Notes: a model not told the origin generated them from the letters alone. A stretch of 64,000 bases of DNA from Hamiltosporidium tvaerminnensis FI-OER-3-3 (GCA_022605425.2 JAKIMF020000005.1:310001-374000), one strand, 5' to 3'. Numbered from the stretch's first letter, positions 1-62,964 are shown. Numbers and translations are program-made.

Positions 1-377
1 ATAGATATAAATAAGAGAAATGAATTAGAAATATTTTTATTATTTCTCAATTTGGGTTGTTTATATCTATAATTTTTTTTTCGTTTCATGAATTCTAAAT
101 TCTAAATTTTAAATTTAGTGTTTTTTTTTATTGCTGTTTCTTAAAATTTGGAAATTATTATTTAATTGAATTTAGAATTTAGTCCAAGGTTTAAGTATTT
201 CATTTTTATTTCTTGTATTTATTTGATTTGAATAGGCGAAGGTTTTACTTTTATATTTTCTTTAAATATTCATTCGAATTTTTTTTTGTAAATCTATTAT
301 TTTTTTAAAAAATGTGTTATTTTAAATATTTATACGAAGCTAAAACCAAATACTTTTGGATTTTTTTTAAATTTCAA

Positions 378-512
378 CGAGGTGGAAGAAAATATATAAA
401 AAGGTAAAAAATTTTTAACCTTGAATCTTATAAACGATTTTTAAAGTTAAAAGAGGTAGAAATAAATATATAAAAATGGTAAAAATATTTTAACCCAGAA
501 GTTTATTAAATA
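378..512 (+). repeat. Two tandem copies of the RLE retrotransposon 3'-terminal ~70 bp
   Basis: GAGGTAGAA...ATATAAAAATGGTAAAAATATTTTAACCCAGAAGTTTATTAAATAA matches the retroelement 3' ends at 4778-4838 and 15575-15636. Confidence 0.8.
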
Positions 513-1989
513 AAAAATTATACTTAGATATATACTATTAGATAAGTAAAACAATTTATTGTACTACACTTTCTTCTTTAAATGTATTTTTATCTAATTT
601 TATTTCCCTAACAATTAAAATCTTATATTCCATCCTAATATAATTTCACATTAATTTAATTCATTCTAATAAATTTCTTATAAATTCAATCTTAATTTTA
701 TTCGATGATTTAATTTAAATCTTATCTAATAAAATGATGCCTGTATGATCGTTTTGGCATTTAATTCGTATACTTTTGTCCCTAATTTTTATTTAGAACT
801 TCTAAATACTAAACAAGTAACTTAAAGATCAAAACAATAGAATTAAGTTTCTGTATTAAGAAGATTTTTTTAAATAAATATGATAACAGGTCTAATCTTG
901 AATTATATTCTTAGTTTAAACTATATAAGAATAAATCTTATACAAAAAATTCATAATTTCATTTATATTAAATTAAAATAATACTTTAGGTGTATAGAAT
1001 GCTAGTATGGGATATATCCTCGATATAATATTATTCTTAGCATCTAATTATGTTTTATTTCCCGTGTGTTACCCAAAAAATTCTGTTGCAAACATACAGT
1101 GGATTACTAGTATTTTACAATGTATTATGCTATTAATTTACTAAGTATTTCTCTGTTGCCTGATAGACATCAAACGATTGTATTTACATGTGTTTTTAAT
1201 CTATCAAAGATTTTGGCACGTATTGGAGTATAAATATAGCAGATTAAAGCAAAATTTTCGGTTTATAAATTATACTATGATTGCGACTTGATATAACAGA
1301 TGTGTTATAGTGAGTAATCCGAAGAAAATTACTTTTTAAATAAAATATTGAAAATTTAATTATAAAAGTCGGACTTATAATCTCATTCAGTAGCTAAAAA
1401 TTTTTAAAATATATAAATTCAAATAAAATGTAGGACTTAAATACTCTCATTTGCTTGCTGATAAGGGTAAAAAAATATCTACATACTAAAATAGAATGTA
1501 AAATTCTTTTTTAATTCTATTCTATCAGATATAAAGTACTATTAAGTCGATATTTTTATTAAATTACGTCTAATTCGAGAAAATATATAATTTTAGCTAT
1601 TTACAATCACTCTGCTCGAATACACTTTTTAATTTAAAAAAATAATAGATAAAAGAATAAAAGATTTTAAAATAATTCGGCTTAAAATAATCTCTTTTCT
1701 TACAAAACCAAAGAACATCTTCAATTGATGATTTAAAATAGTCAATTGTTTAGTATTTTATCTAAAGTTAACAATATAAGATATGATAATAAATGGTAGA
1801 TGAATTTTATTAAAAATTAATTTAATATCTGATGTAATATCATTAAGGAAATTAAAATAAGATTAAAAGATATATTAATAACCTTTTTTCATTTTGATAC
1901 ACTTTGTTTAAGATAAAGAAAATCAATGCAGATTTATAAATAAACACTCGATTTCAAATCTATATAATAAAAAAAACAATAATAAACAA

Positions 1990-3195
1990 ATGATTGGCAA
2001 AATAAAGAACAGCGGAAATATTAAAAAAATTAATATTTCAGAAGTAACAAAAAATCAGGGACTTGAATCGAGTGAACTGATTGGAATCTTAAATAAAATC
2101 GATGAATGCAAGCAAGATATTAATGATATGGGAAATATACATAAAAGTATATTTAAACTCATTAAAAATTTGAAATTAAAGGAGAAAGAAGAAGAGAGTA
2201 TAAAAACTAAAGAAGATTTGGAAAAAGCAGATATATCCTTTCTTGAAAACCCAGCAGTTAAAATACATGAAATCAATATTTGGAATCATGAAGATAAGAG
2301 ATTCCCGATGTTAAAATATCATATGGAATATAAATTTCCTATAATGATATACAAAAAAAATGAAATTTCTTTTCAATCAAAGCTGGTAAATGAACCATCT
2401 CGAGATAGAAAACAAGAAATTCCATTTAACAAATTAGAAAACAAGAGAAAAAAAGCTAATGATACTATAAAATATGATTTACTTAGTGATAAAGAAAAGA
2501 TCAAATTGGCTTGTTTTTGCTTTAAGAAGCTTCGTAAATATAGATCCAGTTTTAAAGATAGTATTTTAGAAAGAATTTCAGATATATTCAGATCTTCGTT
2601 TAAGAAAGATTCTTATCATATAAAAAAAGCAAATACATTTGTTTATACCGTTGGTGACCATATTTTAGATGAAGGGATCAAAAAAGAGGGATTGTTTAGA
2701 ATTTCCGGTAAATATGCTTATTATAAATTTATGCCGGGTGTTTTAGCTGCAGGAAAGAGATATGATTATACTGAGTTATCAGTTCATGACAACGCTTCAA
2801 TTTTCAAAGCATATATTCGGGAGATAATGAATGGGATAATTTCAGTTCAGATTGCAGAAAGGGTGATGAAAATAATAAAAAACCAGACGGATCCTTCAAT
2901 AATAGAATATATTGTACCTTTAATTATATTTTCGATTACAAATGAGAACCGAAAGATGCTTATGTATTTACAGAAAATCTTTCGAAAAGTTGATGAGTAT
3001 TCAAAAGATAATAAAATGGGGTCAGATAATCTATATAAAATTTTTACTCCCACTATTTTTCCAAATATTGAATGTTATGATTTGAATTCCATAAATTTGC
3101 AAATTGAGATTGTAAAAAGAATTTTTGAGTCAAATTTAACAGAAATCCCTTGTTTTTTGTATGAAGAAGCACTTTCGGTAGCTAAAAATCAATAA
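1990..3195 (+). CDS. RhoGAP domain protein (copy 1)
   Basis: Intact 401 aa ORF with EGLFRISG (arginine finger), HDNASIFKAYIREI and NKMGSDNLYKIFTPTIF RhoGAP boxes. AATAAA overlaps the stop codon. Confidence 0.9.
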   Translation: MIGKIKNSGNIKKINISEVTKNQGLESSELIGILNKIDECKQDINDMGNIHKSIFKLIKNLKLKEKEEESIKTKEDLEKADISFLENPAVKIHEINIWNHEDKRFPMLKYHMEYKFPIMIYKKNEISFQSKLVNEPSRDRKQEIPFNKLENKRKKANDTIKYDLLSDKEKIKLACFCFKKLRKYRSSFKDSILERISDIFRSSFKKDSYHIKKANTFVYTVGDHILDEGIKKEGLFRISGKYAYYKFMPGVLAAGKRYDYTELSVHDNASIFKAYIREIMNGIISVQIAERVMKIIKNQTDPSIIEYIVPLIIFSITNENRKMLMYLQKIFRKVDEYSKDNKMGSDNLYKIFTPTIFPNIECYDLNSINLQIEIVKRIFESNLTEIPCFLYEEALSVAKNQ

Positions 3196-3270
3196 ATCCT
3201 TTAATTTTCCACTTTAAATGTTTTCATTTTATTTTTTAAATATTTTGAATATATTTTTAGAATTATTCAA

Positions 3271-4838
3271 AATAGAAGATAGCAGAGGAATCCAAACACG
3301 TAACTCATTTGAAGAAGTACAGAGCAAACTTTAATCAGGAGTTGAAAGACTTTTTCACACTAGATTAAATGCAAAAAAATTATTTTCTGCAATCAATCAA
3401 CATGCGATATCGTTAATCAACTATCAGATAGGAGTACTTCGACTTGAACCGGCTGACTTCTCTAAGTTAGATAAGGCAGTTCGTACGGTGTTAGTGAAGA
3501 ATAAGATACATCTTCGCCCAGGATGTAAAAAGCTTTTGTATCTTTCTAGAACAGAACTTGGAAGAGGCCTACATAGTGTTGAGTTGCGAAGCGAACATAT
3601 GCTTCTGCAACTCTTGGATTGTCTGGAAAAAAGTAAAGAAATATCAACTAGACGAGCAGCAATCCTCAAGGTGGAGAATAATAATAAAACTCATCTTGCA
3701 CTAATAAAAGGCTTCTTAAAAGTAAAGTACAGGTTGGTAGAAAAAGTCATTAAGAAAAGTTTAAAAGAAGCTCAACTTGCAAAACTATATAACGAAATAG
3801 AAAAACGAAAACTCAATTCAAAGTTATATAATGCAAGGAAAAATGAACTTGTGAGTGTTAGTGACTCTTCAAGATGGCTAAAGAGAGGAAATATTAGGCC
3901 ACGAAATGAAGCTGTGTTCTGTTATATCCAGGATAGAAATGTATTCTGGGGAGCAGATGGTGTGTGTCAACATTGCGGGAAGTCTGGTAAGACTGTAGAT
4001 CATCTAGCAACTCGATGTGAAAAAATGCTAGGCCATGACTACACCAGACGGCATAATGAAGTGGTTAGATGCCTACACTTACTTCTCCTAAATAGATATA
4101 AGTTTAAGTCTTCAAAACGAATTAGGAGTAACGCAGTTCAAGAAATTCTTGATAATGAGTACGCAGAGATAAGAGTGGACCCAGAATTAAAACTGATGTT
4201 AAAATTCAGAATAACAGACCGGACAGATTTATTTTAGAAGAAGAAGAATAAGATAACACTCATTGAAGTAGGAATCACTTCCCAAGATTCACTTCAAATA
4301 GTTGAAACTGAAAAACTTAGGAAGTATGACCTGCTAGCCAATGAGTTGGGTCTCTTTTATAGGTGTAGTGTTGAGATAATCCCTTATGTGATGACCTGGG
4401 ACGGTATTGTGACAAAATACCATAAATCTCATCTTAAAAGACTAGAAATACTCATGAATGTAGAGGCACAAATTCAATCTATTGTACCTAAGAAGACAGT
4501 CGAAACGATTTCCTTTGTTCGACGAAGAGGACTTGAGTCAGGACTAAATGCCGAAGAGAGCTGGGAGAGAGCGTCAATGGGTGTTATTATGAGATCAGAG
4601 ATGCATGAGGAACCAAAACCCTCTTTAAAAGGAGAGAAGAGAGAGGAAGATGATGCAAAAAATTTTAAACCAAAAAATAAAGCACCCCTTATTTCACAAG
4701 GAGGAACCACTTTAGAGGAACCGACCAATAACATAAATGAAGAGTCGGATTTGGAAGAAGAGACAATAGTGGTTAAAGAGATAGAAGAAAACATATAAAA
4801 ATGTTAAAAATATTTTAACCCAGAATTTTATTAAATAA
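3271..4838 (+). mobile_element. 5'-truncated non-LTR retrotransposon, RLE type (R4/Dong-like), pseudogenised
   Basis: Post-RT thumb region, CCHC knuckle CQHC...DHLATRC, RHN motif and PD..IEVG..K..KY restriction-like endonuclease, with stops and frameshifts. Ends in ACCCAGAATTTTATTAAATAA. Confidence 0.88.
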
Positions 4839-14832: not shown

Positions 14833-15636
14833 TTACACTAGACGGCATAATGAAGTGGTTAGATGCCCACACCTACTTCTTCTAAATAGATATAAGTTTA
14901 AGTCTTCAAAACGAATAAGGAGTCACTCAGTTCAAGAAATTCTTGATAATGAGTATGCAGAGATAAGAGTGGACACCAGAATAAAAACTGATGTTAAAAT
15001 TCGGAATAACAGACCGGACATATTTATTTTAGATAAGAAGAAGAATAAGATAATACTCATTGAAGTAGGAATCACTTCCCAAGATTCACTTCAAATAGTT
15101 GAAACTGAAAAACTTAGGAAGTATGACCTGCTAACCAATGAGTTGGGCCTTATTTATAAGTGTAGTGTTGAGATAATCCCTTATGTGATGACCTGGGACG
15201 GTATTGTGACAAAATACCATAAATCTCATCTTAAAAGACTAGAAATACTCATGAATGTAGAGGCACAAATTCAATCTATTGTACTTAAGAAGACAGTCGA
15301 AACTATTTCCTTTGATCGACGAAGAGGACTTGAGTCAGGACTAAATGCCGAAGAGAGCTGGGAGAGAGCGTCAATGGGTGTTATTATGAGATCAGAGATG
15401 CATGAGGAACCAACACCCCCTTTAAAAGAAGAGAAGAGGGAGGAAGATGATGCAAAAAATTTTAAACCAAAAAATAAAGCACCCCTTATTTCACAAGGAG
15501 GAACCACTTTAGAGGAACCGACCAATAACATAAATGAAGAGTCGGATTTGAAAGAAGAGACAATAGTGGTTAAAGAGGTAGAAGAAAACATATAAAAATG
15601 TTAAAAATATTTTAACCCAGAATTTTATTAAATAAA
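14833..15636 (+). mobile_element. 5'-truncated RLE non-LTR retrotransposon with 15-bp target-site duplication
   Basis: Open RHN...RPDIFILD..IEVG..KY frame to the stop. Flanked by ATTTTATTTGTACCG at 14818-14832 and 15637-15651. Confidence 0.93.
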
Positions 15637-25787: not shown

Positions 25788-26719
25788 TATAAATACATAA
25801 GAAGGTCTAAAACTCTAAAAAAAATGTTTTTACAAGCTGGTAAATGAATATATATTTATAATTAAAATATATTTAATAAAAAATAATTAATTTTACTTCG
25901 AAGATTTTTGGCGCCTTTAAGCCACAAACCGATCAAGCGATAAACCAGAGTTCACTACAGTGATATTTTTATCCAAAAAAAGACATTCTGTTATATCCGA
26001 ATATTTGAAACTGTAATCTTAACCTTAATAACGATTCAAAATCAAGCAAATACATACTTAATCTCAATCTTTATTAACAATTTCGTTTCAATGAAGAAAT
26101 TAAACCAGAAAAAAGTAAAATACTTACACCTCTAAATTTCCCATTTTTTCAGATTTCAAAATGAATCCTTTGAATTTTTAAATATGTTGTAAGAATTTCC
26201 TTTTCTTCTCTGTTTTAATCACTAAAAAAACTTTAAAAAAAAATTTTTTACATATAAAATAAAAAAAGGCTAAAGAGTAAATTATATTATAAAAGAATCT
26301 ACATCATAATTATATCTCTTTACCAAATATGACATTAAACAGTTATTTTAAAGTTATAAACATAGATATTAAAGAATTTTTCTTTTTATAACCTTATAAA
26401 TTCTCTATTCTAATATATAGATTCTAAACAATCTATAAAAAATCTTAAAAAATATATAAAAACCACCTTTGATATATTAAACTTAAAAATGTATAAGAAG
26501 TATAATATTTATATTATACTTATCAATCTATAATCTGTAAAGAATTGTTTAGAATACAACTTATATATATAAAAGATAAATTATACATTAAATTTTAAAA
26601 AATATATATGAAGTCTATTATTCTGAATATATTCTATATCTGCTTAATCAGGATAAGAAGATTTAAAAATAAAAAAATTTAAGTTAAAAATAAATAAACC
26701 TCTTTTAATACTAAATTGT

Positions 26720-27229
26720 AAACTCTATCACTAACACCCTCTTATTATCTAGTCTGTTCATTAACACACTCTTATTATCTACTCTTATTAGTAACACCCT
26801 CTTATTAAATGTCTCTATAATTAACACCCTCTTATCACACACTCTATACTTAACACAATCTTATCATATAGTCTTATCACTAACACCCTATTATTTACTG
26901 TCTATATAATTAACACCCTCTTATTATCTAGTCTGTTCATTAACACACTCTTATTATCTTTCTTATCACTAACACCCTATAATTTACTGTCTATATAATT
27001 AACACCCTCTTATCACACACTCTATACTTAAAACCCTTTACTTCACAATCCTGCTAATAACACAATATAACACCCTATTATTTACTGTCTATATAATTAA
27101 CCGCCTCCAACATACCTTTATTACTAACACCCTTTACTCCATAATCCTGCTAATAACACAAAATAACACCCTCTTATCACAAACTCTATAATATAACACC
27201 CTCCAACATACCTTTATCACTAACACCCT
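26720..27229. repeat. Non-coding imperfect tandem array built on TAACACCC
   Basis: About 16 occurrences of TAACACCC(T/C)-like cores at ~25-35 bp spacing immediately 3' of the UTP18-like stop. Confidence 0.85.
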
Positions 27230-29380
27230 TTACTCTATACTTCTACTAATAACACTAATATAACACCCATGTCCTATATAACATTTATCACCCTTTAAAC
27301 AACAACACTTAACCTTCTTATCTCTTATATCACTAACACCCTTTAGAACAAAGCCATCCATCATTTCCACCACCCTAACACCATTTTCCCCATCCATACA
27401 AATAACACCCCACTCTTTATTACCATCAACACACTTAACACCCTTTAATCCTTTATTCTCATAAAATACCTCTTTCTCCATATGAATAACACCCTTTAAA
27501 TTACTATATACCCAATACCCTTTATCACCCCCTATAATAACATACTCTTCTAAATTAAAAATATTCCTAAATAACACCCCTATTTCAGTATTTAACACAT
27601 TTTTTAAAATACAACTTTTTAAACAGTAAATGTTTATATTAACACCCATTAATACTACAATATAATCTCTTGTTAAACAATAGTCTGTTATTTTACCTTC
27701 TATTTCTCCTAACACGTCATAAGTATTACCAGTTGAGTTATTACTAAGACCCCTATAATCATACTCTTTATCACTAACACCCTCTTCACTACTCCTATTA
27801 CTAACACCCCCTTTATTTTTAGTAATTAAGTTCTTATTACTAACACCCTCTTCACTACTCCTATTACTAACACCCCCTTTATTTTTAGTAATTAAGTTCT
27901 TATTACTAACACCCTCTTCACTACTCCTATTACTAACACCCCCTTTATTTTTAGTAATAGATTCTCTATTACTAACACCCTCATAATCATACTCATTATT
28001 ATTAACACCCCCTTTATTAATACTCAGTTTTATTATAATATCAGTGTTATTTCTAATACCTAACACCCATACACTATCACTGTTACACAATATTTTCTTA
28101 TGCATCCAACACCCTGTCTTACGTATATCTCTAACATCAAAGATAATACCATTAAAGGTAGTATTATCTGTAGTATTGTTAAAGGGGTGTTGTTTATATG
28201 ATGTGTAATTATGAGGGTGTAAATTATCAGTACTATCGATAACCGGGTTATAATTACTATTACTATTATTAACACCCTGTTGTTTATTAGATAGCTTGTT
28301 AACTGGGTTATAATTACTATCACTCTTATTAACACCCTGTTGTTCATTAGATAGCTTGTTAACAGGGGTATAATTACTATTACTGTTATTAACACCCTGT
28401 TGTTCATTAGATAGCTTGTTAACACCCTTTATATCTGATCCCTTATTACTAACACCCTTTATATCTGATCCCTTATTACTAACACCCTTTATATCACTAC
28501 CCTTATTAATACCACCCTCCAACATAATATCACTACCCTCCAATCCACTAACACCCTTTGTTATATATCGTATCTCCTTAATAACACTATTATTAGACAC
28601 CAATAAAATAACACCCTTTAACATACACATATCAACTACCTTATAATTACTTATATTAACACCTTTTAACTCACCTTTTATATTACCTAAATATACGTTA
28701 TTTAAAACATCCACTACACAAATAACACCCCCCTCTACACTAACACACTTTACCCTGTTATTTACCTTATATTTTCTTACACATGAATATATAACCTTAT
28801 TTTCTTTATAAATAAGACCCTCTAACGAACCTCTTATACAAGACGTATTAACAGGGTGTTGTATATTATTGTTATTAACAGGGTGTAAACTATTAGATGC
28901 ATTATTAATAGGGTGTAAACTACTAGTATTATCAATAATAGTGTTTAAACTACTAGTATTATCAATAACACCCCTATAACCCCCACAACCAACATCACCC
29001 CTATAACCCCCATAACCCCCATAATCACTATCATCACTATCTACCCATACACACCCTTTACTCTCCTTCTTATTTAACACCTCTTCCTTACTAAACACCA
29101 TTTCTTCTAACAAAGAAGAATCAGTAAGAAAATCCGAGTCATCCACATTATTTGTATTTGTATTTGTATTAGTATTTATATTTATATTTGTATTTGTATT
29201 AGTACTATCAGTATTTGTATTACCACTATCACTATCACCCATACTATCACTATCACCCATACTATCACTATCACCCATACTATCACTATCACCCATACTA
29301 CCACTATCACCCATACTATCCCCACCCATACCACTATAACTTATTTTTCTCTTTTTTTCTTCTTTTATATTCTTTTTCAT
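27230..29380 (-). CDS. UTP18-like WD40 U3 snoRNA-associated protein with low-complexity insertions
   Basis: LEEMVF and VWVDSDDSD match the UTP18 N-terminal motifs, followed by beta-strand-rich WD-like segments interrupted by GVSN/GVNN repeats. Confidence 0.6.
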   Translation of the reverse strand: MKKNIKEEKKRKISYSGMGGDSMGDSGSMGDSDSMGDSDSMGDSDSMGDSDSGNTNTDSTNTNTNININTNTNTNTNNVDDSDFLTDSSLLEEMVFSKEEVLNKKESKGCVWVDSDDSDYGGYGGYRGDVGCGGYRGVIDNTSSLNTIIDNTSSLHPINNASNSLHPVNNNNIQHPVNTSCIRGSLEGLIYKENKVIYSCVRKYKVNNRVKCVSVEGGVICVVDVLNNVYLGNIKGELKGVNISNYKVVDMCMLKGVILLVSNNSVIKEIRYITKGVSGLEGSDIMLEGGINKGSDIKGVSNKGSDIKGVSNKGSDIKGVNKLSNEQQGVNNSNSNYTPVNKLSNEQQGVNKSDSNYNPVNKLSNKQQGVNNSNSNYNPVIDSTDNLHPHNYTSYKQHPFNNTTDNTTFNGIIFDVRDIRKTGCWMHKKILCNSDSVWVLGIRNNTDIIIKLSINKGGVNNNEYDYEGVSNRESITKNKGGVSNRSSEEGVSNKNLITKNKGGVSNRSSEEGVSNKNLITKNKGGVSNRSSEEGVSDKEYDYRGLSNNSTGNTYDVLGEIEGKITDYCLTRDYIVVLMGVNINIYCLKSCILKNVLNTEIGVLFRNIFNLEEYVIIGGDKGYWVYSNLKGVIHMEKEVFYENKGLKGVKCVDGNKEWGVICMDGENGVRVVEMMDGFVLKGVSDIRDKKVKCCCLKGDKCYIGHGCYISVISRSIE

Positions 29381-29400
29381 ATCAATGGGTAATAAACCCT
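29381..29400. promoter_or_regulatory. 20-bp bidirectional intergenic region with CCC motifs on both strands
   Basis: cat|ATCAATGGGTAATAAACCCT|atg. CCC lies 2-4 nt before the + strand ATG, and TTACCC lies ~6 nt before the - strand ATG. Confidence 0.65.
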
Positions 29401-32400
29401 ATGAACAATAATATAAAAGAAATACTTTACAAGCTATGTGGTATAGATAGTACTAATGATAGTACTAATGATAATATGTATGATACTGGTAGAGATATAG
29501 ATAGTAAGGACATAGATAGTAAGGATATAGATAATAGGGATATAGATAGTAAGGATATAGATAGTAAGGATATAGATAGTAAGGATATAGATAATAGGGA
29601 CATAGATAGTAAGGACATAGACAGTAAGGATATAGATAATACCATTAATACACTTATTTCTAATTTACATTATATAATGTTAAAGGTATCTACTAATAGA
29701 TTTATAACTAACCCTTTAACAAGTATATTATATAGTGTTATAGAAGAAGTAATAGATATATATTTAAAGGGTATTAGTAGTATAATAAAGGGGGAGTATG
29801 GATTAGGGGGTGTTACTTATTGTAGGGATATGTTAGAGGGTGTTAGTAATAATGAGTATAGATTAGAGGGTGTTACTTATTGTAGGGATATGTTAGAGGG
29901 TGTTAATAATAAGGAGTATGGAGTAGAGGGTGTTAATGATAATGAGTATAGATTAGAGGGTGTTAATGATAATGACTTAAGAGGTGTTAATAAGGAGTAT
30001 AGATTAGGAGGTGTTAATGATAAGGAGTATAGATTAGAGGGTGTTAGTAATAAGGAGTATGGAGGTGTTAATAAGGAGTATAGATTAGAGGGTGTTAATA
30101 ATAAGGAGTATAATTATAGGGGTGTTAACACTACTGACTTAAGAGGTGTTAATAATGTAATAAAAGAAGATATTTTTGAAGAAGATGTTATTAGTATTAT
30201 AGGGTGTTATTATAGTGTTATGTATGAGATAAGGGTGTTAATAGATAGTGAATTAGATATAAAGGGTATTAGAGATAGAGGAGAGTATTACTTAGAGGGG
30301 TATGAGAGTAATAAATATTCTATGGGTATGGGTATGTGTAATAGTAGTAATAACCCATATAACTATAGTAGTAACTATAACTATAGTAGTAATAACTATA
30401 CTAGTCATAACTATAACAACATTAACCCATATAACTATAACAACTATAACAACATTAACCCATATAACAACTATAACACATACACCCCTATTACCTCCCC
30501 TCTTAATACTATATCCCCTTTTACTCTTTGTTCTGCTTTCTATTCTACACTGTTATCTCGTATATCTTTAAATATAAAAGAAGAAATAAAAGAATGGTTA
30601 TTATATGGTAAGTGTTATACTTTAATAAGAGAAAGGAATAGTGAATATGGATATGAAGAGTGTTGGTATAATGGTAAGTATAAGGTTATAAGTATACCTT
30701 ATTTCTTAGAAGATAAATGGAGTGATATTTATATTTGTGGTGTATTAGTTAATATGATAAGAGAGATATGTAGTTATGATTATAGGGATTATAAGGATTA
30801 TGGTATGTGGGGATATAGGGATTATAGTAGTAGTGTTAGTAATAGTGTTAGTAGTAGTGTTAGTAGTGGTGTTAGTAATAGTGTTGGTAGTACTGTTAGT
30901 AATACTGTTAATAGTGACCCTTATACGTCTTATAACCCTTATACTAACCCTAACCCTAATACCTGCATAAACAATACTAACCCTAACCCTAACCCTAATA
31001 CCTGCATAAACAATACTAACCCTAACCCTAATACATGCATAAACAATACTAACCCTAACCCTAACCCTAATACATACATAAACAATACTAACCCTAACCC
31101 TAACCCTAATACATGCATAAACAATACTACTACACTCTCTGGTGTTAAGTATAGAATCTATAATAATTACTTAGATACTTATACTTTATCTACTTATAAT
31201 ATATTATTAAAACAAGAAATAAATAATTTAATATTAAAAGAAGTATTATATGATTTAAATATAATAAGAAGTATTATATTACTTATGGATACTTCTTATC
31301 TTACAGATACATTTGAAGGAGTAAATGTTAAGGAGTTATTTTGTAATGGTAATGGTAATGGATATGAGGGTGTTAGTATAGTAGAAAGAATTAACAGTAA
31401 TATTAATAAGAGATATAGTAGTAGGATTGATAGGAGGGATGTAGGGGGTGTTAGTAACAGTAGTAGTAATTATAAGGGTATTAGTGATAAGGATATGTTA
31501 GAGGGTGTTAATAACAGTAGTAGTAATTATAAGGGTGTTAATAACAGTAGTAGTAATTATAGGGGTGTTAGTGATAGTAGTAGTAATTATAGGGGTGTTA
31601 ATAACAGTAGTAGTAATTATAAGGGTGTTAGTAACAGTAGTAGTAATTATAGGGGTGTTAATAACAGTAGTAGTAATTATAAGGGTGTTAATAACAGTAG
31701 TAGTAATTATAAGGGTATTAATAACAGTAGTAGTAATTATAAGGGTGTTAGTGATAGTAGTAGTAATTATAAGGGTGTTAATAACAGTAGTAGTAATTAT
31801 AAGGGTATTAATAATAGTAGTAGTAATTATAAGGGTGTTAGTAACAGTATAGATGATTATAGGGGTATTAGTAATAATACTAACAACCCTTATACCACTT
31901 ATACTAACAACCCTTATAACAATATATCTAACCCTAACCCTTATACTACCCACTATACTAACCCTTATACTACCCTACCTAACCCTAACCTATCTAACAA
32001 CAACCCTTATACCACCCCTTATACTACTATTACTGTTACTTTGAGTGATATAGGGGTGTTAGAAAGAGTAGGTAAAATATTAGGAATAAAGAGAGATTGG
32101 TTAGATATAGGACACTTAAATAAAATAATAATAAAATATGAGTGTAAAGGAGTGTTAGGTATGTTTATAAGTAAAAAGATAAAAAGTGAATTTGAATTGA
32201 TATATGGGTTTATGGTATTAGTATATGGTGTTATGTATAGTTTAAGAAGAATTGATAATTGTTTGGTTGGAAGTGTGTTAGGAGATGTTGTAGAGTATAT
32301 GTGGTGTTGGATGTGTTACTGTGTAATGGAGAAGTATGGAAGGGTAGTTAGTGGTGGTGGTATTGGTAGTAGTGGTGGGGGTAGTAGTGGTGGGGGTAGT

Positions 32401-33540: not shown

Positions 33541-35549
33541 TCCCCTTGTTTTTACTCTTTACGACAAATGTTTTTAAGAAGAAGTAATTTTATTATTTTT
33601 TTTATTTTTTTATTTTTTTGATTAGAGTATGGGTATGAGATTTTATAAGTAAAGTAAAAGAAAAAGAAGAGAAAAATATGATTTATGAGGTGGATATAAC
33701 AATTGAGAGTATAATCAATACAGTTATAGGTATTTTACTTTCTTAATATGAAAATTCATATCTTTTTATTTCTAAAGCTTTTGAGTTTATATAGGTGTCA
33801 GTAGATCAAGCTTTTATAATTTAATTATTTCGGAAACGTTTATAGTATCTTAATTCATATTCAAATATGTAGAGGCTTAGTGTCAGTAATTAATTCTATT
33901 TGTTTTTTTTTTTGCAGCATTCATATTCAAATATGTAGAGGCTTAGTGTCAGTAATTAATTCTATTTGTTTTTTTTGCAGTACAAACAATATTTGATTGA
34001 ATGAATAAAAATGGGCGGAAAGATATATTATAATGAGAAGTTTTCTTGTGCTGAAACTATTGATGTGTTTAAAAAAATTGACTTGAAAAAAGATGATGGA
34101 GAGATTATGCCAGAAGAGAATGGAGAGCGACGTTTAATTGACACTTGTCTCAGAGATATATTCTTGACTAATACTATCAATAGAAAACACATAGAAAAGT
34201 ATTTGCATCGAATCAAAGTAATTTAGAGGAATAAATCGTGAAAATAGAGGTACGAACTCGAAAGCTTTCAAATTATTTGGTTTACAGGTGAGTTCTGGAC
34301 CACATTAATCGAATAGTCGGTAGATATGCTGACTCTCATCTACTGATAATGAAAATCGGGTTTCTGCAATTACCCAAGTAGCCCAGGTATGTTTTAACAA
34401 GGAAACACAAAAATTCAGGCATTATAAGCGCGGAATGAATCCGTAAAAACTAAAATTTCAGTGTTAAACCTCAAAGAATATCTTTGAGAAAGCACATAGA
34501 GAGGGAATGCTCTTTTTTTTATATGACAAATAGTTGAAAGAAAACTATGCGAGAGTTTTATTAAAATTTAAGGAAGACACATGATGTTACGTAAATATAG
34601 TTAAGAAGAATGGACTACTGGATTTCTATGAACGGAATTAATTTTGTAAGAAAGTAGGAAGCAATTCCGAAAAAAAAACTATTTTTGTATGTTATTTCGA
34701 AATCGATATTATCGAGGCCTATCCCAAATGTGGAATAAAAGCATATTTTAGATCATTAAAAAAATGGGAAGTTTCCGGTTTAAAATATTGGACAAAAACA
34801 AATATTGGTACCATATGTTTTGTATTCTTACTATTTGTGTCATATACTCATCAAGCCAAGTTTCTTTTACTTTATGAATTTTTTGGAATCATAAATTGGC
34901 TTCTTAACTGGAAATCTGCTGCAATTAATGGTATATTTAATTATTATAACAAAAAACTTGTAAATCATAATAAATATCTTTATGATATTCAAAATTTATT
35001 TGTTTTGAAAAAACACCGTGCTCGTGGATCTGTTTTATTATTGGGTAACTTACCTTATTCCTTAAGAAGAAGTCTTACATAAAAGGCCGACTACAAGCCA
35101 AAAACTTTTAATTCAAACTTTTACAAGCTGACCACTAAGTGTGTTAAAGCAGTCAACATCTTAAATTAGAAGCAGTGGAAATTACGCTTAATAATTTCTT
35201 TGAAGTGGCTCAAGCAGCAAAAGAACGGGGCCTGTTTAATGTTGCACTATATAATGAGTATAAGAGGAATGTGAGACAACGTTTATATCTGTAAAAGCCG
35301 CAAACGATTCTTTAGATCAATCGTATTTAGCAACGATATCGTAAAGCTACATTCTTGTGACTTAATTCTAAAATTTAATACGGTAAAAAATATCAAAATA
35401 GAAAAATGCTATTGCAGGGCGCCTGGAAATATCATGGACAAAAAGATGAAAAGTATAATCATATAAGGGTACTGTTTGTTACGTTTATTATTTGTTTTGT
35501 ATATGGATCCATTGAGCGGAAATCTCAATAAGAAATAAAAAGGTGATAA

Positions 35550-36000
35550 TTTAAACAGAGGCTGCATCCCATTCTTACTTACTTATTTCGGTTTCGTTTT
35601 ATCTCTCGGTCTTGCGGATGAACAAACGAAAAGATCCCGTTTGTTTCTTTTAATCCGTATAACACGGGATTATGGGGGATTTTTCTATAGATTCAGCGTC
35701 GTTTATATTCCACCAAAATCTTAAAAATGTTTTTCAAACAATTCTAGACATTTATTGCTAAGGAGATAGCTTTTAATGGGGTGATCTTCTCTCTACCAAT
35801 CGTTGATTATATCTATTCTAAAATCGTTTTAAGCTGAAACTGAGTTTTCATTCTTCTTTTTGATTCATCTCCTCTCCAGAAAATATTTTTCACTAAGTTC
35901 CTTCTTAATTTTCATAATTTATCATAACATCTCGATCTGCATTGTATCAAACCAAGAAAAGGTGCAGTGGTTTGTAGGCTTTTCTCTTTTTTTTATTAAT
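35550..36000 (-). pseudogene. Decayed Ty3/Gypsy reverse transcriptase fragment
   Basis: IEKSP...KETNGSFRLF resembles the start of a Gypsy RT domain. Frameshifted. Confidence 0.4.
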
Positions 36001-37949: not shown

Positions 37950-39050
37950 TTCATCTAAATCTTTTTTATATATTTCTGTTAGATTCTCCTTTGTACTTAC
38001 CTCCAAAATATGTAGAAAGGTATTTTTTTGTTTTTATTTGTTTAATACCATCTTAGGGTTACTAGCTTGTCTAAAAGGAGGTATTGCTGCTTCGGGAATA
38101 TCGTTTTTATACATGCACTAATTTATGCACTATCCTAACCTTTTTCGACATCGGTTATGGTTAAAATCCTCTTTTTTAATAAAAAAAGATCACCTAGAAC
38201 GCCATTTTGAGTACAATCGAATAGATATATGTTCTTAGATTCGTTATATTTAAACTTTTTAAAATATGTCTTATTGTATTTTATCAAAATAACATCCCGG
38301 GTTATCAAGAAAGACATTTTTAGCGATACAGTTATTTATGAGGCGCACAACACATTGATAAATAGGTCATAATTTTTAACTTTTTTCTCTTAAACTAGGT
38401 GAAGTGAGTCTTTGGGGATTTTTTCTATCTACCCGAGAGTTATCATATTTTTCTTTTGTCTAAAATAAAAATAACATATCTTGTGTTACATATTTGACAT
38501 TGGTTTTAATTCTATGGTTAAGCTTATATCTGCATACACTCTTCAAGAATTTCTTGAATTGAGTGACGACTTATTCGCCTTTTAGACCAAACTTAAAATA
38601 TTTAGATGACTAGATGAGGCATCTAATCCTTTATTAACGTCTTCTAGTATAGTCTTTCCCGAGTCTTTTTTTCGCATCGTGTCACCGAATCCTTTACCGG
38701 TTTACCGGATTTTTACAAAATTGAAACATAACTTCTGCACGCCAAAATAAATTTATATCCTGTATATAGCAAAACACTGCTCCATCACATGGCTTTCTAT
38801 TCCATTTCTTTCCCAATCTAAAAGAGGCAAAACACTCATAATCTCGTTCATTTTTTCATTATTTAACCTTACTAGGGTTTTTGTTTTTATATTTCGTAAT
38901 ATAATGTTGCAATCTGAGTCTTTTCTACTTTCCTCTAATGAATTCCTCACCTTCCAACCTAATTTTACTTTTAAGGAGTTTTTTTTATCGTGCAATGTGT
39001 GGTTTATTATTATTCACAGGCTGTTGATTGTTTCTCTTCGATTTGATATT
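37950..39050 (-). pseudogene. Possible decayed LTR retrotransposon RNase H/integrase remnant
   Basis: Weak similarity of VLPLLDWE..CDGAVF to the RT/RNase H connection. No ORF continuity. Confidence 0.25.
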
Positions 39051-39443
39051 TACTTGCATTTTTCAAGAAAATCCGAGATCTAATGATAAACTAATATTAA
39101 TGAATATTTCTATAATTTTAAATATATTCTACGATATTTATTTATTTTGTCTTTTTAAAAAATGATTTCACAAAATCTTTTTTATTCATCATTTCTGTAA
39201 AACAATTTATAACCTATAATTCACATTCGATATTTAAATTTTAAAAGAAACATGCTGTTACGCTCGCAAAACGAACTTAATTTTGTATTCAACAAAAATA
39301 TAAAGATACACAGGATTATTTCCACAACATATTATCCTTAGCTATAGATGTTTGCTATATTTTTCGGGCTTAAAAACCCATGAACCGTTTGCTCGTATAT
39401 TTTCCAGATCTTTACATCCGCATTTTTAGCCGTTCCTATGCAG

Positions 39444-54749: not shown

Positions 54750-56299
54750 TTATTTAATAAAATTCTGGGTTAAAATATTTTTACCATTTTTATATGTTTT
54801 CTTCTACCTCTTTAACTACTTTTGTCTCTTCTTCCAAATCCGACTCTTTATTTATGTTGTTGGTCGGTTCCTCTAAAGTGGTTCCTCCTTGTAAAATAAA
54901 GGGTGCTTTATTTTTCGGTTTAAAATTTTTTGCACCATCTTCCTCTCTCTTCTCTTCTTTTAAAGAGAGTTTTAATTCCACATGCATCTCTGATCTCATA
55001 ATAACACTTATTGACGCTCTCTTCGGCATTTAGTCCTGACTCAAGTCCTCTTCGTCGATCAAAGGAAATTGTTTCGACTGTTTTCTTAGTACTATAGACT
55101 AAATATATGCCTCTACATTCATGGGTATTTCTAGTCTTTTAAGATGATATTTATGGTATTTTGTCACAATACCGTCCCAGGTCATCACATAAGGGATTAT
55201 CTCAACAATACACTTATAAATAAGACCTAACTCATTGGCTAGCAGGTCATACTTCCTAAATTTTTCAGTTTCAACTATTTGAAGTGAATCTTGGGAAGTG
55301 ATTCCTACTTCAATGTGTGTTATCTTATTCTTCTTCTTATCTAAAATAAATATGTCCGGTCTGTTATTCCGAATTTTAACATCAGTTTTAATTCTGGTGT
55401 CCACTCTTATCTCTGCATACTCATTATTAAGAATTTCTTGAACTGAGTGACTCATATTCGTTTTGAAGACTTAAACTTATATCTATTTAAGAGATGTAAG
55501 TGTAGGCATCTAATTACTTTCTTATGCCGTCTAGTGTAGTCATGCCCTAGCATTTTTTCACATCTAGTTGCTAGATGATCTACAGTCTTCCCAGACTTCC
55601 CGCAATGTTGAAACATACCATCTGTTTCCCAGAATACTTTTCTATCCTGGATATAGCAGAACACAGCTTCATTGCGTGGCCTAATATTCCCTTTCTTAAG
55701 CCATCTTGAAGAGTCACTAACACTTACAAGCTCATTTTTCCTTGCATTATATAACTTTGAATGGAGTTTTCGTTTTTCTATTTCGTTATATAGTTTTGTA
55801 AGTTGAGATTTTTCTAAACTTTTCTTAGTAACTTCTTCTACTTACCTATACTTTACTTTTAAGAAGCCTTTTATCAGTGCAAGATGGGTTTTATTATTAT
55901 TTTCCACTTTTGAGATTGCTGCTCTTCTAGTTGATATTTCTTTACTTTTTTCAAGACAATCCAAGAGTTGCAGAAGCCTATGTTCGCTTCGCAACTCAAC
56001 ACTATTTAGGTCTCTTCCAAGTTCTGTTCTAGTAAGATACAAACGCTCTTTACAAGACGATGTATCTTATTCTTCACCAACACCGCATTACCTGCATCAT
56101 CTAACTTAGAGAAGTCAGCCGGTTCAAGTCGAAGTACTCCATGTGATAGTTGATTAACGATATCGCATGTTGATTGATTGCAGAAAATAAATTTTTTGAG
56201 TTTAATCTAGTGTGAAAAAGTCTTTCAAGTCCTGATAAAAGTTTGCTCTGTACTTCTTCAAATGAGCTACGTCTTGGGATTCCTCTGCTATCTTCTATT
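54750..56299 (-). mobile_element. 5'-truncated RLE non-LTR retrotransposon attached to RhoGAP copy 2
   Basis: Same sequence and same 5' junction (..KIEDSRG) as 3271-4838, with multiple stops and indels. Confidence 0.88.
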
Positions 56300-56375
56300 T
56301 TAAATAATTTTAAAAATATATTCAAATATAGTTAAAAAATAAAATGAAAACATTAAAAGTGGAAAATTAAAGGAT

Positions 56376-57581
56376 TTATTGATTTTTAGCTACCGAAAAT
56401 GCTTCTTCATACAAAAAACAAGGGATTTCTGTTAAATTTGACTCAAAAATTCTTTTTACAATCTTAATTTGCAAATTTATGGATTGCAAATCATAATATT
56501 CAATATTTGGAAAAATAGTGGGAGTAAAAATTTTATATAGATTATCTGACCCCATTTTATTATCTTTTGAATACCGATCAACTTTTCGAAAGATTTTCTG
56601 TAAATAGATAAGCATCTTTCTATTTTCATTTGTAATCGAAAATATTATTAAAGGCACAATATATTCTATTATTGAAGGATCCGTCTGGTTTTTTATTATT
56701 TTCATCACCCTTTCTGCAATCTGAACTGAAATTATCCCATTCATTATCTCCCGAATATATGCTTTAAAAATTGAAGCGTTGTCATGAACAGATAACTCCG
56801 TATAATCATATCTCTTTCCTGCAGCTAAAACACCCGGCATAAATTTATAATAGGTATATTTACCGGAAATTCTAAACAATCCCTCTTTTTTGATTCCTTC
56901 ATCCATAATATGGTCACCAACGGTATAAACAAATGCATTTGCTTTTTTTATATGATAAGAATCTTTCTTAAACGAAGATCTGAATATATCTGAAATTTTT
57001 TCTAAAATATTATCTTTAAAGCTGGATCTATATTTACGAAGCTTCTTAAAGCAAAAACAAGCCAATGTGATCTTTTCTATATCCCTAAGTGAATCATATT
57101 TTATAGAATCTTTAGATTTTGTTTCCTTGTTTTCTAATTTATTAAAAGAAATTTCTTGTTTTTTATCTCGAGATGGTTTATTTACCAGCTTTGATTGAAA
57201 ATAAATTTCATTTTTTTTGTATATCATTATAGGAAATTTATATTCCATATGATATTTTAACATCGGGAATCTCTTATCTTCATGATTCCAAATATTAGTT
57301 TCATGTATTTTTACTGCTACATTTTCAAGAAAGGATAAATTTGCTTTTTTTAAATCTTCTTTAGATTTTATACTCTCTTCTTCTTTCTCCTTTAATTTCA
57401 AATTTTTAATAATCCTAAATATACTTTTATGTATATTTCCCATATCATTAATATCTTGCTTGCATTCATCGATTTTATTTAAGATTCCAATCAGTTCACT
57501 CGATTCAAGTCCCTGATTTTTTGTTACTTCTGAAATATTAATTTTTTTAATATTTCCGCTGTTCTTTATTTTGCCAATCAT
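56376..57581 (-). CDS. RhoGAP domain protein (copy 2)
   Basis: Intact 401 aa ORF, highly similar to 1990-3195, with EGLFRISG retained. Confidence 0.9.
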   Translation of the reverse strand: MIGKIKNSGNIKKINISEVTKNQGLESSELIGILNKIDECKQDINDMGNIHKSIFRIIKNLKLKEKEEESIKSKEDLKKANLSFLENVAVKIHETNIWNHEDKRFPMLKYHMEYKFPIMIYKKNEIYFQSKLVNKPSRDKKQEISFNKLENKETKSKDSIKYDSLRDIEKITLACFCFKKLRKYRSSFKDNILEKISDIFRSSFKKDSYHIKKANAFVYTVGDHIMDEGIKKEGLFRISGKYTYYKFMPGVLAAGKRYDYTELSVHDNASIFKAYIREIMNGIISVQIAERVMKIIKNQTDPSIIEYIVPLIIFSITNENRKMLIYLQKIFRKVDRYSKDNKMGSDNLYKIFTPTIFPNIEYYDLQSINLQIKIVKRIFESNLTEIPCFLYEEAFSVAKNQ

Positions 57582-59057
57582 TTGTTTATTATTGTTTTTT
57601 TTATTATATAGATTTCAAATCGAGTGTTTGTTTATAAATCTGCATTGATTTTCTTTATCTTAAACAAGGTGTATCAAAATGAAAAAAGGTTATTAATATA
57701 TCTTTTAATCTTATTTTAATTTCCTTAATGATATTACATCAGATATTAAATTAATTTTTAATAAAATTCATCTACCATTTATTATCATATCTTATATTGT
57801 TAACTTTAGATAAAATACTAAACAATTGACTATTTTAAATCATCAATTGAAGCTTTTCTTATGTTTTGTAAGAAAAGAGATTTGTTTAAGCTGAATTATT
57901 TTAAAATCTTTTATTCTTTTATCTATTATTTTTTAAATTAAAAAGTGTATTCGAGCAGAGTGATTGTAAATAGCTAAAATATATATTTTCTCGAATTAGA
58001 CGTAATTTAATAAAAATATCGACTTAATAGTACTTTATATCTGATAGAATAGAATTAAAAAAGAATTTTACATTTTATTTTAGTATGTAGATATTTTTTA
58101 CCCTTATCAGCAAGCAAATGGGATTATTTAAGTCCTACATTTTATTTGAATTTATATATTTTAAAAATTATTAGCTACTGAATGAGATTATAAGTCCGAC
58201 TTTTATAATTAAATTTTAAATATTTTATCAAAAAATACTTTTCTTCGGATTACTCACTATAAAACATCTTTTATATCAAGTCGCAATCATAGTATAATTT
58301 ATAAACCGAAAATTTTGTTTTAATCTTTTTTATTTATACTCCAATACGTGCCAAAATCTTTGATAGATTAAAAACACAAGTAAATGCAATCGTTCGATGT
58401 CTATCAGGCAACAAAGATAACATAGTAAATTAATAGCATAATATATTGTAAAATACTAGTAATCCACTGTATGTTTGCAACAGAATTTTTTGGGTAACAC
58501 ACGGGAAATAAAACATAATTAGATGCTAAGCATAATATTATATCGAGGATATATCTCATACTAGCATTCTATACACTTAAAGTATTATTTTAATTTAATA
58601 TAAATGAAATTAAGAAATTTTTTTGTTTAAGATTTATTCTTATATAGTTTAAACTCGGAATAAAATTCAAGATTGGACCTGTTATCATATTTATTTAAAA
58701 AAATCTTCTTAATACAAAAACTTAATTCTATTGTTTTGATCTTTAAGTTACTTGGTTAGTATTTAGAACTTGTAAATAAAAATTAGGAACCCAAAGTATA
58801 CGAATTAAATGCCAAAACGATCATACAGGCATCATTTTATTTAAAAAGATTAAAACTAAATCATCGAATAAAATTAAGATTGAATTTATAAGAAATTTAT
58901 TAGAATGAATTAAATTAATGTGAAATTATATTAGGATGGAATATAAGATTTTAATTTTTAAAGAATTAAAATTAAATTAAAAATACATTTAAAGAAGAAG
59001 GTGTAGTAGAATAAATTGTTTTACTTATTTAATAGTATATATCTAAGTATATTTTTA

Positions 59058-60626
59058 TTATTTAATAAAATTCTAGGTTAAAATGGTTTTACGATTTTTA
59101 TATGTTTTCTTCTACCTCTTTAACCACTTTTGTCTCTTCTTCCAAATCCGACTCTTTATTTATGTTACTGATCGGTTCCTCTATAGTGGTTCCTCCTTGT
59201 GAAATAAAGGGTGCTTTATTTCGGTTTAAAATTTTTTGCACCATCTTCCTCTCTCGTCTCTTCTTTTAAAGGGGGTGTTAATTCCTCATGCATCTCTGCT
59301 CTTATAATAACACCCATTGACGCTCTCTCCCAGCTCTCTTCGGCATTTAGTCCTGACTTAAGTCCTCTTCGTCGAACAAAGGAAATTGTTTCGAAGTTTT
59401 CTTAAGTACTATAGACTGAATGTTTGCCTCTACATTCATGGGTATTTCCAGTCTTTTAAGATGAGATTTATGGTATTTTGTCACAATACCGTCCTAGGTC
59501 ATTACATAAGGGATTATCTCAACACTACACTTATAAATAAGACCCAAATCATTGGCTAGCAGGTCATACTTCCTAAGTTTTTCAGTTTCAACTATTTGAA
59601 GTGAATCTTGGGAAGTAATTCCTACTTCAATTAGTGTTATCTTATTCTTCTTCTTATCTAAAATAAATATGTCGGGTATGTTATTCCGAATTTTAACATC
59701 AGTTTTTATTCTGGTGTCCACTCTTATCTCTGCATACTCATTATCAAGAATTTCTTGAACTGAGTGGCTCCTTATTCGTTTTGAAGACTTAAACTTATAT
59801 CTATTTAGAAGAAGAAGGTGTAGGCATCTAACCACTTCATTATGCCGTCTAGTGTAATCATGGCCTAGCATTTTTTTTCACATCTAGTTGCTAGATGATC
59901 CACAGTCTTACCAGACTTCCCGCAATGTTGACACACACCATCTGCTCCCCAGAATACATTTCTATCCTGGATATAGCAGAACACAGCTTCATTTCGTGGC
60001 CTAATATTTCCTCTATTTAGCCACCTTGAAGAGTCAATAACACTTACAAGCTCATTTTTCCTTGCATTATATAACTTTGAATGGAGTTTTCGTTTTTCTA
60101 TTTCGTTATATAGTTTTGCAAGTTGAGCTTCTTCTAAACTTTTCTTAGTGACTTCTTCTACCAACCTGTACTTTACTTTTAAGAAGCCTTTTATTAGTGC
60201 AAGATGGGTTTTATTATTATTCTCCACCTTGAGGATTGCTGCTAGTCTAGTTGATATTTCTTTACTTTTTTCCAGACAATCCAAGAGTTGCAGAAGCATA
60301 TGTTCGCTTCGCAACTCAACACTATGTAGGCCTCTTTCAAGTTCTGTTTTAGGGAGGTATAAACGCTCTTTACATCCTGGGCGAAGATGTATCTTATTAT
60401 TCACCAACACCGCACGAACTGCCTTACCTAACTTAGAGAAGTCAGCCGGTTCAAAGTCGAAGTACTCCATGTGATAGTCGATTAACAGATCGCATGTTGA
60501 TTGATTGCAGAAAATAATTTTTTTGCATTTAATCTAGTGTGAAAAAGTCTTTCAACTCTTGATATAAGTTTGCTCTGTACTTCTTCAAATAGACTACGTG
60601 TTGGAATTCCTCTGCTATCTTCTATT
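59058..60626 (-). mobile_element. 5'-truncated RLE non-LTR retrotransposon attached to RhoGAP copy 3
   Basis: Same junction and motifs (CQHC..H..C, RHN, PD..IEVG). Confidence 0.88.
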
Positions 60627-60702
60627 TTAAATAATTTAAAAAATATATTAAAATATAGTTAAAAAATAAAATGAAAATATTAAAAGTGGAAAATTAAAGG
60701 AT

Positions 60703-61830: not shown

Positions 61831-62964
61831 ATTGTTTTTTATTATATAGATTTGAATGTGTTTTTATAAATCGCTTTTTTTTATCTTACGTGTATCATGG
61901 TTATTAATATATCTTTATCTTTTTTAATTTCCTTATGATATTACATCTATTAATTAATTTTTAATAATTCATCTCCATTTATTATATTCTTTATTGTTAC
62001 TTTATAATACTACATTCTTTTTAATATATTTGTTTTTGTTTTTAATTTTTTAGATTATTTTAAATTTTTTTTTTATTATTATTTTTAATTAAGTGTTTCG
62101 GTATTTATGTATTATATTTTATTAATTTAATAAAATATTCTTATGTCTTTTATCTTATATTATTTTACATTTTATTTTGTTGTATATTTACCTTGGTATT
62201 TTTAGTCCTATTTTATTTAATTTATATATTTTAAAATTATTGTCTATGATTATAGTCCGACTTTTGTAATTAAATTTTAAATATTTTATCTAAAATATTT
62301 TTCATTCTCACTTAACATCTGTTTCTGTCGCAATCATGTTATTTATAAACAAATTTTGTTTTAATTTTTTATTTATACTCATACGTGCCAATCTTTGATA
62401 GATTAAAACAGTATGAATCGTTCTGTCTTGCGATACATGTATTATAGCTTATATATTGTAAAATACTGTATCCACTGTTGTTTGACATTTTTGTACACCG
62501 AAATAAACATATTGATGCTAAGATATATTTATCGGATATATCTTACTAGCATTCTTACATTAATTATTCTTTTAATTTAATATAATGAAATTAAAATTTT
62601 GTTTAAGATTTATTCTTATATAGTTTAAACTCAATAATTGATTGACCTGTTATCATATTTATTTAAAAATCTTCTTATACGAACTTAATTCTATTATTTT
62701 GATCTTTAGTTACTTGGTTGTATTTAGAACTTCTAATAAAATTGAGTATCGAATAATGCCACATCTACGGCATCATTTTATTTAAAAGATTAAATTTAAT
62801 CATCAATAATTGATTGAATTTATAAGAAATTTATTAGATGAATTAAATAAATGTGAAATTATATTAGGATGGAATATAAGATTTTAATTTTAGAATAAAT
62901 TGTAAATACTTTTAAGGGTGTGTATAATATTGTTTTACTCATTTAATAGTATATATCTGTATAT

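Follow-up and report, generated by a model that had tools for sequence, protein, structure and literature searches.

A RhoGAP gene bracketed by retrotransposon pieces and its probable spread by recombination in the microsporidian parasite Hamiltosporidium tvaerminnensis

Introduction

Hamiltosporidium tvaerminnensis is a microsporidian parasite of Daphnia, and its genome (21.6 Mb, 17 contigs) includes a stretch of 64,000 bp on contig C14 (C14:310001-374000; hereafter the window) in which a RhoGAP gene is found repeatedly between pieces of a non-long terminal repeat (non-LTR) retrotransposon. The question raised by this locus is by what route a cassette of this composition was multiplied, that is, whether it was copied through RNA by the retrotransposon machinery or moved as DNA. 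A first-pass annotation, made from the sequence of the window alone, had proposed that the cassette is a non-autonomous, gene-carrying retroelement and had named ectopic recombination between dispersed retrotransposon copies as the alternative. On the basis of the anatomy of the cassette, its inventory throughout the genome and the comparison of its junctions and flanks, we found that the alternative fits better and that the cassette was probably spread by homologous recombination, in which the retrotransposon flanks would have served as portable homology.

Results

The unit was defined as positions 514-4838 of the window (4,325 bp), and its parts are referred to as G (unit 1-2757), DOWN (the right-hand retrotransposon part) and UP (the retrotransposon piece on the left of G), as listed in Table 1. 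Comparison of the window with itself bore out the three units that had been noticed, namely copy A at 514-4838 (+), copy B at 54750-59056 (-) and copy C at 59058-62968 (-), the last being continued by tail repeats and a further block to about 63947. Copies B and C stand in tandem, and copy C is a mosaic with respect to copy B, the 3' half of G being 98-99% identical and the 5' half just 68-86%. The upstream region of copy A, or spacer (window 514-1989), contained no open reading frame (ORF) of 60 aa or longer, and the GC content of window positions 1-2000, which include the spacer, was 20%. As had been claimed, the copies have in common a junction between the RhoGAP part and the retrotransposon at the residues IEDSRG, just past the reverse transcriptase (RT) domain; DOWN starts there at position 2233 of the full-length element (window 3271), at the codon after the RT match. 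The homology in every copy stops at the retrotransposon 3' end, ...TTATTAAATAA, also in agreement with the first-pass annotation. Its additional claim that this end is followed by three different flanks needs a refinement, because the third quoted flank consists of the first bases of copy B and, as B and C are tandem, is not independent.

In a search of the genome with G alone, in which all 27 candidates were scored, 22 complete copies of G were found at 92-95% identity, far beyond chance: one each on contigs C3, C5, C6 and C15, two each on C1 and C4, three on C14 and eleven on C12. These copies extend from unit position 1 or 4 to 2728-2757, and tiny pieces, part of the duplication on C4 described below, were among the other matches. 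Comparison of the flanks indicated about 13 distinct sites on 8 contigs and about 12 composite sites; 21 of the 22 copies are composites with the retrotransposon, and one is free of it. An older paralogue, which is complete and 78% identical, is present at C12:2413415. Furthermore, an internal fragment (unit 1133-2202, about 90% identity) is present at C12:2451697-2452764 and in the H. magnivora contig PITI01001120.1, which holds no more of the unit than this, and its presence in both species indicates that the fragment is older than the split between H. tvaerminnensis and H. magnivora.

Multiplication at the DNA level was evident at several places. The region C12:372-475 kb contains eight copies that fall into two groups by shared flanks and are, therefore, segmental duplicates. 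On C4, a unit carries a nested insertion of a young full-length retrotransposon, and the whole block of 8.17 kb is tandemly duplicated. Matches on C4 over unit 2700-4325 were considered as candidates for 5'-truncated units and were rejected, because they are the right halves of units that were split by the nested young insertion, whose duplication, about 30 bp long, lies in a short repeat. All of the young duplicates, namely the C4 pair, the C12:372-475 kb cluster and the B-C pair, are thus tandem or segmental, and the dispersed copies are old, with a mean divergence of 7.4% in the upstream region, although the retrotransposon family is still active.

The junction between the retrotransposon tail and G, of near-constant length, and the junction between G and retrotransposon position 2233, at unit 2757/2758, were the same in 21 of 21 composites, which indicates that the composite arose once. 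Every composite carries a retrotransposon tail on its left side, at the shortest 57 nt and at the longest a full-length element, and on its right side the 1,568-bp 3' part of the same family. UP is full-length at C15, C12:1468k and C12:409k and truncated at C4 (3,432 bp), C3 (1,488 bp), C6 (951 bp) and C1 (621 bp). Ten "long-form" copies, A and C among them, have as UP a tail of 64 nt, before which are tail repeats and a block of 483 bp (block X). About 12 distinct and unrelated 3' flanks begin directly after ...TTATTAAATAA.

With respect to the origin of the composite, the retrotransposon-free copy of G at C12:2134522 was informative, as its homology to the units ends exactly at both junctions. 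This copy and the 78% paralogue have in common a further 480 nt upstream that are found nowhere else in the genome, and this copy looks like a progenitor. The upstream homology with the paralogue also indicates that the left boundary of the unit is a point of retrotransposon insertion in an older locus and not the end of a transcript. Independent retrotransposon insertions were found within 30 bp after the gene, at positions 2728 on C4, 2741 in the old paralogue and 2758 in the unit itself, and because of this hot spot downstream of the gene, two ordinary insertions suffice for the founder. A founder locus, in which the flanks of the retrotransposon-free copy would stand beside a composite, was searched for and none was found.

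None of the 27 scored candidates was a 3'-anchored copy truncated within G. Taking, as a rough estimate, a chance of about 0.3 that 2,757 nt are reverse-transcribed without a stop and a number of about 11 independent dispersals, the lack of any truncated cargo makes reverse transcription very unlikely (about 1e-6, roughly). This chance was taken from the gradient in the element itself, for which about 943 candidates were found for the last 304 nt compared with about 203 for the first 304 nt, these being unscored candidates at first look, among which related families may be included. As the incidental retrotransposon copies in the examined loci were also mostly short, frequent 5' truncation is likely in this family, and a chimeric RNA of 4.3 kb or more would then be expected to give many copies that are cut within G.

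The retrotransposon parts of the composites bear traces of exchange. UP and DOWN of one locus have long tracts in common that are 98-100% identical (about 780 nt at 100% in C15), whereas the G copies differ by 4-9%, which points to local gene conversion. DOWN in C6 switches over its last 300 nt to a second retrotransposon family (94-97% identity), DOWN in C5 has an internal tract of this family, and the composite at C12:1375k has another foreign 3' end. The second family is abundant and 80-88% identical to the first throughout, and its tracts inside the first-family pieces in C6 and C5 indicate that conversion or template switching between the families occurs. In addition, at least 40 copies of the second family were observed at 94-96% identity to the C6 tail (L011 5480-5809). 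G is also mosaic among the copies, with shared derived sites limited to segments. A tree of the retrotransposon parts was tried for finding a master lineage and rejected, being dominated by local conversion. In the RT region, which conversion by DOWN cannot reach, the four long upstream elements fall in different places among ordinary old copies and make up no clade of their own, so that they look like residents and not like the copies of one master. The tree of the dispersed copies is star-like with similar branch lengths and is blurred by mosaicism.

Target-site duplications were compared between composites and ordinary retrotransposon copies. A duplication around the whole block was found in one of eight composites (C6; 12 bp, exact and adjacent to both ends), and duplications were present in 8 of 8 young and 4 of 11 old ordinary copies. 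The use of these duplications as strong evidence against reverse transcription, for which a comparison of 1/8 with 7/7 ordinary copies had been considered, was dropped in view of the value of just 4/11 in age-matched old copies. Among old full-length copies (on C1, C2, C3, C5, C10 and C12), a duplication is still present in one of six; either recombination has swapped the flanks of such copies or the older insertions came about in another way.

The ORF at window 1990-3195 matches the RhoGAP domain (PF00620) with an E value of 1.6e-21, above the cut-off, and its motifs align to those of solved RhoGAPs: GLFRISG, which contains the arginine finger, aligns to GLFRKSG of ARHGAP11A, and NKMGSDNL, the conserved Asn motif, aligns to NKMDSSNL. 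The protein is 91-92% identical to annotated proteins of H. tvaerminnensis. The ORF (401 aa) is intact in 14 of the 22 copies. In agreement with the first-pass annotation, copies A and B are intact with the arginine finger, and the lesions of the retrotransposon ORF differ among copies A, B and C; the RhoGAP ORF of copy C is broken. Among nine independent intact copies, the ratio of nonsynonymous to synonymous divergence (dN/dS) was 0.44 for the whole ORF and 0.33 for the GAP domain, and the mean pairwise divergence was 4.7% for the ORF, 7.4% for the upstream region and 11.8% for DOWN, the value for the upstream region being near the dS of 9.0%. The suggestion that the RhoGAP gene is selected was thus sustained: it is under purifying selection, most copies being kept intact while the retrotransposon ORF decays. 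No support was gained for a secreted, cytoskeleton-modulating factor, nor for an exported effector role; the N-terminus is hydrophilic when judged by eye only, without a signal-peptide predictor. In the literature searched, no paper was found that links Hamiltosporidium with RhoGAP or describes this cassette.

The full-length retrotransposon is 3,804 bp long. Its only ORF encodes about 1,260 aa and holds an RT domain and, toward the C-terminus, a CCHC motif followed by RHN and PD...E...K motifs of the restriction-like endonuclease (RLE) type, as read directly in intact copies without a profile test. No Pfam match to an AP-endonuclease was found in the 1,031 residues scanned, which begin after approximately the first 230. 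From these features, the element is classed as an RLE-type (R2-like) non-LTR retrotransposon. It is the same as R2-like, RLE-bearing elements in having a single ORF with RT followed by CCHC and PD...E...K motifs and in giving no AP-endonuclease match here, whereas it differs from them in its lack of site specificity and in its target-site duplications of 12-15 bp. Ordinary young copies have clean duplications of this length at diverse AT-rich sites, and because of these diverse flanks, the element is regarded as not site-specific; site-specific insertion is typical of many RLE clades. Long open frames are kept in more than 100 copies, young copies are 97-99.5% identical among themselves, and the family is still active. 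In a young full-length copy within C16:908238-912810, the 3' end (C16:911310) is separated from a 13-bp target-site duplication by 18 extra nt and an A run of about 12 nt, as if a small piece of 3' sequence had been transduced by way of a polyadenylated read-through RNA. "Stand-alone 1.57-kb elements" were considered as a discrete short family and rejected, because they are 3' parts of full-length elements with RT immediately upstream.

Block X was found at 10 places in the genome, each directly upstream of long-form units and nowhere else, and its interpretation as an independent repeat family upstream of copy A was rejected. Beside copy A, it follows a full-length retrotransposon copy (C14:306082-309880), and its first bases look like the retrotransposon 5' end. 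The last 60-75 nt of the retrotransposon were observed as two or three tandem copies at several places, including window 364-513 and 63078-63300, and retrotransposon copies often follow one another head to tail at a spacing of 0-14 nt. Fragments of more distantly related elements, whose identity to the main family is 66-70%, are present at window 33970-35575 and 38205-39078. Apart from the retrotransposons, window 26700-31900 contains two satellite arrays that run in opposite directions: TAACACCC-type units occupy 26.7-28.5 kb, and the complement of these units occupies 29.8-31.9 kb. The arrays result in an extreme GC skew, which changes from -0.69 to +0.65. At window 30941-31129 there is an interstitial telomere-like repeat of (CCCTAA)n interleaved with other sequence. 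This region could have arisen when chromosome ends fused head to head long ago, or it could be a block of subtelomere-like character within the contig.

Table 1. Parts of the unit and features of the window related to it
Coordinates	Strand	Feature	Description
Unit 1-1476		Upstream region	Non-coding, AT-rich (about 1.5 kb)
Unit 1477-2682		RhoGAP ORF	401 aa
Unit 2683-2757		Linker	75 nt
Unit 2758-4325		DOWN	Retrotransposon 3' part, 1,568 bp
Window 1-363	+	Block X, 3' part	Block of 483 bp; begins 119 bp before the window
Window 364-513	+	Two tandem retrotransposon 3'-tail repeats	364-434 diverged; 450-513, 64-nt tail abutting the unit
Window 514-1989	+	Copy A, upstream region (spacer)	Unit 1-1476
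Window 1990-3195	+	Copy A, RhoGAP gene	401 aa, intact, arginine-finger motif
Window 3196-3270	+	Copy A, 3' linker	75 nt; ends at the retrotransposon-insertion hot spot
Window 3271-4838	+	Copy A, DOWN	Full-length element 2233-3804; CCHC and restriction-like endonuclease region, in-frame stops, 3' tail
Window 14833-15635	+	Solitary ordinary 5'-truncated retrotransposon copy	804 bp, clean 15-bp target-site duplication; control
Window 54750-56299	-	Copy B, retrotransposon 3' part	Frameshifts
Window 56300-59056	-	Copy B, upstream region and RhoGAP	ORF 56376-57581 intact
Window 59058-60626	-	Copy C, retrotransposon 3' part	Head to tail against copy B
Window 60627-62968	-	Copy C, upstream region and RhoGAP	Degenerate upstream region and broken RhoGAP; mosaic
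Window 63078-64000	-	Upstream of copy C	Three tail repeats (63078-63300), block X (63289-63947), tail of a further retrotransposon piece leaving the window

Discussion

The route that we consider probable is one of homologous recombination at the DNA level. G (2,757 bp, the RhoGAP gene with its 1.5-kb upstream region) would have come from a locus like C12:2134522 and would have been bracketed once by two retrotransposon pieces, a 3' tail on the left and the 1,568-bp 5'-truncated 3' part on the right, which were most likely two ordinary insertions. As direct repeats, these pieces provide portable homology to hundreds of retrotransposon copies in the genome. The cassette could then have spread into resident retrotransposon copies, either by the pop-out of a 4,325-bp circle and its re-integration or by ectopic gene conversion, and unequal crossing-over, giving tandem pairs, and larger segmental duplications would have followed. 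Such a route would leave G complete, the inner junctions constant and the outer ends coincident with retrotransposon ends, and UP would be whatever the resident copy was, that is, a full-length element, a truncated one or a short tail. Purifying selection holds RhoGAP intact in most copies, with the retrotransposon ORF left to decay. Among the features by which repeat-mediated amplification is recognized, brackets of direct repeats, conversion tracts and breakpoints in the repeats, tandem arrays with the period of the unit and always-complete cargo were found here.

Several points weigh against this explanation. Of the intermediates that we infer, neither an orthologous site with a solitary retrotransposon nor a circle was seen; the contigs from other isolates, at 150-400 nt, are too short for junctions or empty sites to be resolved. 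The star-like tree resembles a burst from a master copy. The composite in C6 is flanked by a clean target-site duplication that, at 12 bp, is as long as usual, and its second-family tail needs a chimeric resident or a later conversion, whereas a single reverse transcription with a template switch explains it equally well. In the long-form copies, the homology in the left tail is just 64 nt, which is short for recombination. Moreover, the C16 copy with 18 extra nt and an A run indicates that read-through RNAs of the retrotransposon family can be retrotransposed.

The explanation put forward by the first-pass annotation, that a chimeric RhoGAP RNA ending in the retrotransposon 3' part was recognized by the RT of the retrotransposon and inserted by target-primed reverse transcription as a non-autonomous, gene-carrying retroelement, appears unlikely to us, although several observations favor it. 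The RNA could have arisen by read-through from an upstream retrotransposon, or by a start at the unit 5' end with a jump of the enzyme to a second retrotransposon RNA. The exact termination of the composites at the retrotransposon 3' end with unrelated flanks at about 12 sites on 8 contigs, the variable lengths of UP (621, 951, 1488 and 3432 bp and full-length), the star-like tree, the 12-bp duplication around the whole block in C6, whose second-family tail could be a template switch, the common head-to-tail retrotransposon junctions, and the activity of the family, which is able to carry extra 3' sequence, are all consistent with it, and there is a precedent in the tripartite chimeras of Magnaporthe produced by double template jumps (PMC2104539). 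Against it, no copy is cut within the 2,757-bp cargo even though most retrotransposon copies are probably 5'-truncated, the upstream elements have no common branch specific to a master, and the retrotransposon parts are mosaics with breakpoints and conversion tracts. There are also no young dispersed copies despite the active family, recent duplicates being all tandem or segmental, and no reads matched the locus in the one RNA run examined. The presence of a duplication in only 1/8 composites would point in the same direction at most weakly, since just 4/11 equally old ordinary copies have one. A fuller form of the proposal, in which the cassette is or was a tripartite non-autonomous retroelement whose RNA was mobilized in trans by RLE-type elements of two families in a burst of about 11 dispersed copies, later blurred by recombination, is in our judgment similarly doubtful.

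A combination of both processes, in which reverse transcription with template switches made the founder or a small number of copies, C6 for instance, and the bulk arose later by recombination and by tandem and segmental duplication, would accommodate the peculiarity of C6, which is unlike the other composites in its clean duplication and second-family tail, and the DNA-level duplication, of which there is no doubt at C4, in the C12 cluster and in the B-C pair. However, this combination calls for two mechanisms where one may do, and the founder is explained by two plain insertions because of the upstream homology of the retrotransposon-free copy and the paralogue past the boundary and the three insertions within 30 bp; we regard it as less likely still. 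The recurrence of retrotransposon insertions near the gene 3' end (2728, 2741 and 2758) might suggest that the gene family was dispersed as plain DNA before retrotransposon copies were inserted independently at hot spots, but this is refuted by the same truncation point (2233), insertion position (2757/2758) and left junction in 21 composites, since insertions made independently should differ, as those at the three hot-spot positions do, leaving it hardly credible. The first-pass annotation had also cautioned that the copies could be duplicates of haplotypes or of the assembly. The genome is indeed repeat-rich, and large multicopy repeats limited the assembly according to the authors of the genome, for which PacBio Iso-Seq reads are also published (PMC10542269). 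For the dispersed copies, this caution is refuted by their divergence of 4-9%, unrelated flanks and different lesions, and in an independent run, unitigs carrying the gene are about 10 times as deep as the unique flank, and the gene is multi-copy in the contigs of independent runs. Its probability is accordingly close to nil.

Recombination through the retrotransposon flanks would place the cassette among known processes, and it is rather likely to be a case of repeat-mediated gene amplification. Examples of such amplification come from Alu or L1 copies that undergo non-allelic recombination, from yeast with its Ty/LTR-flanked circles, and from Leishmania, where amplification occurs between the retroposon-derived SIDER repeats. 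The present system is the same in that the cargo lies between direct repeats of one transposon family, with conversion tracts and breakpoints, tandems with the period of the unit and complete cargo, and different in that the copies are fixed at about 12 chromosomal sites and old (4-9%) and are neither extrachromosomal nor stress-induced. No such amplification has been described for a microsporidium in the literature searched. Chimeric retroelements and the 3' or 5' transduction by L1 offer a further comparison. In Magnaporthe, bipartite and tripartite chimeras of WEIRD, Mg-SINE and MGL were formed by template switching of a long interspersed element (LINE), with a 14-bp direct repeat (PMC2104539). 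The composites are like these in consisting of a retrotransposon tail, cellular sequence and a 5'-truncated LINE 3' part that ends at the LINE 3' end, and the 12-bp repeat in C6 is like the 14-bp one. In contrast, the cargo here measures 2.76 kb and comprises an intact gene under selection together with 1.5 kb of non-coding DNA upstream of it, none of the cargo is truncated, all junctions are identical, and the boundary at which homology to the retrotransposon-free copy ends is an insertion point rather than a demonstrated end of a transcript.

Gene loss is what microsporidia are known for, and the present case clearly goes the other way: in a repeat-rich species with a large genome, one regulator of Rho GTPases has reached about 22 copies, of which 14 are intact and under purifying selection. 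The case suggests that an abundant retrotransposon can drive the expansion of a gene family merely by supplying homology, and that gene conversion between retrotransposon copies is common, even across families that are 80-88% identical. The mechanism would be an ordinary one unless RNA-level mobilization is shown, and the lineage-specific RhoGAP family is flagged for the biology of this parasite.

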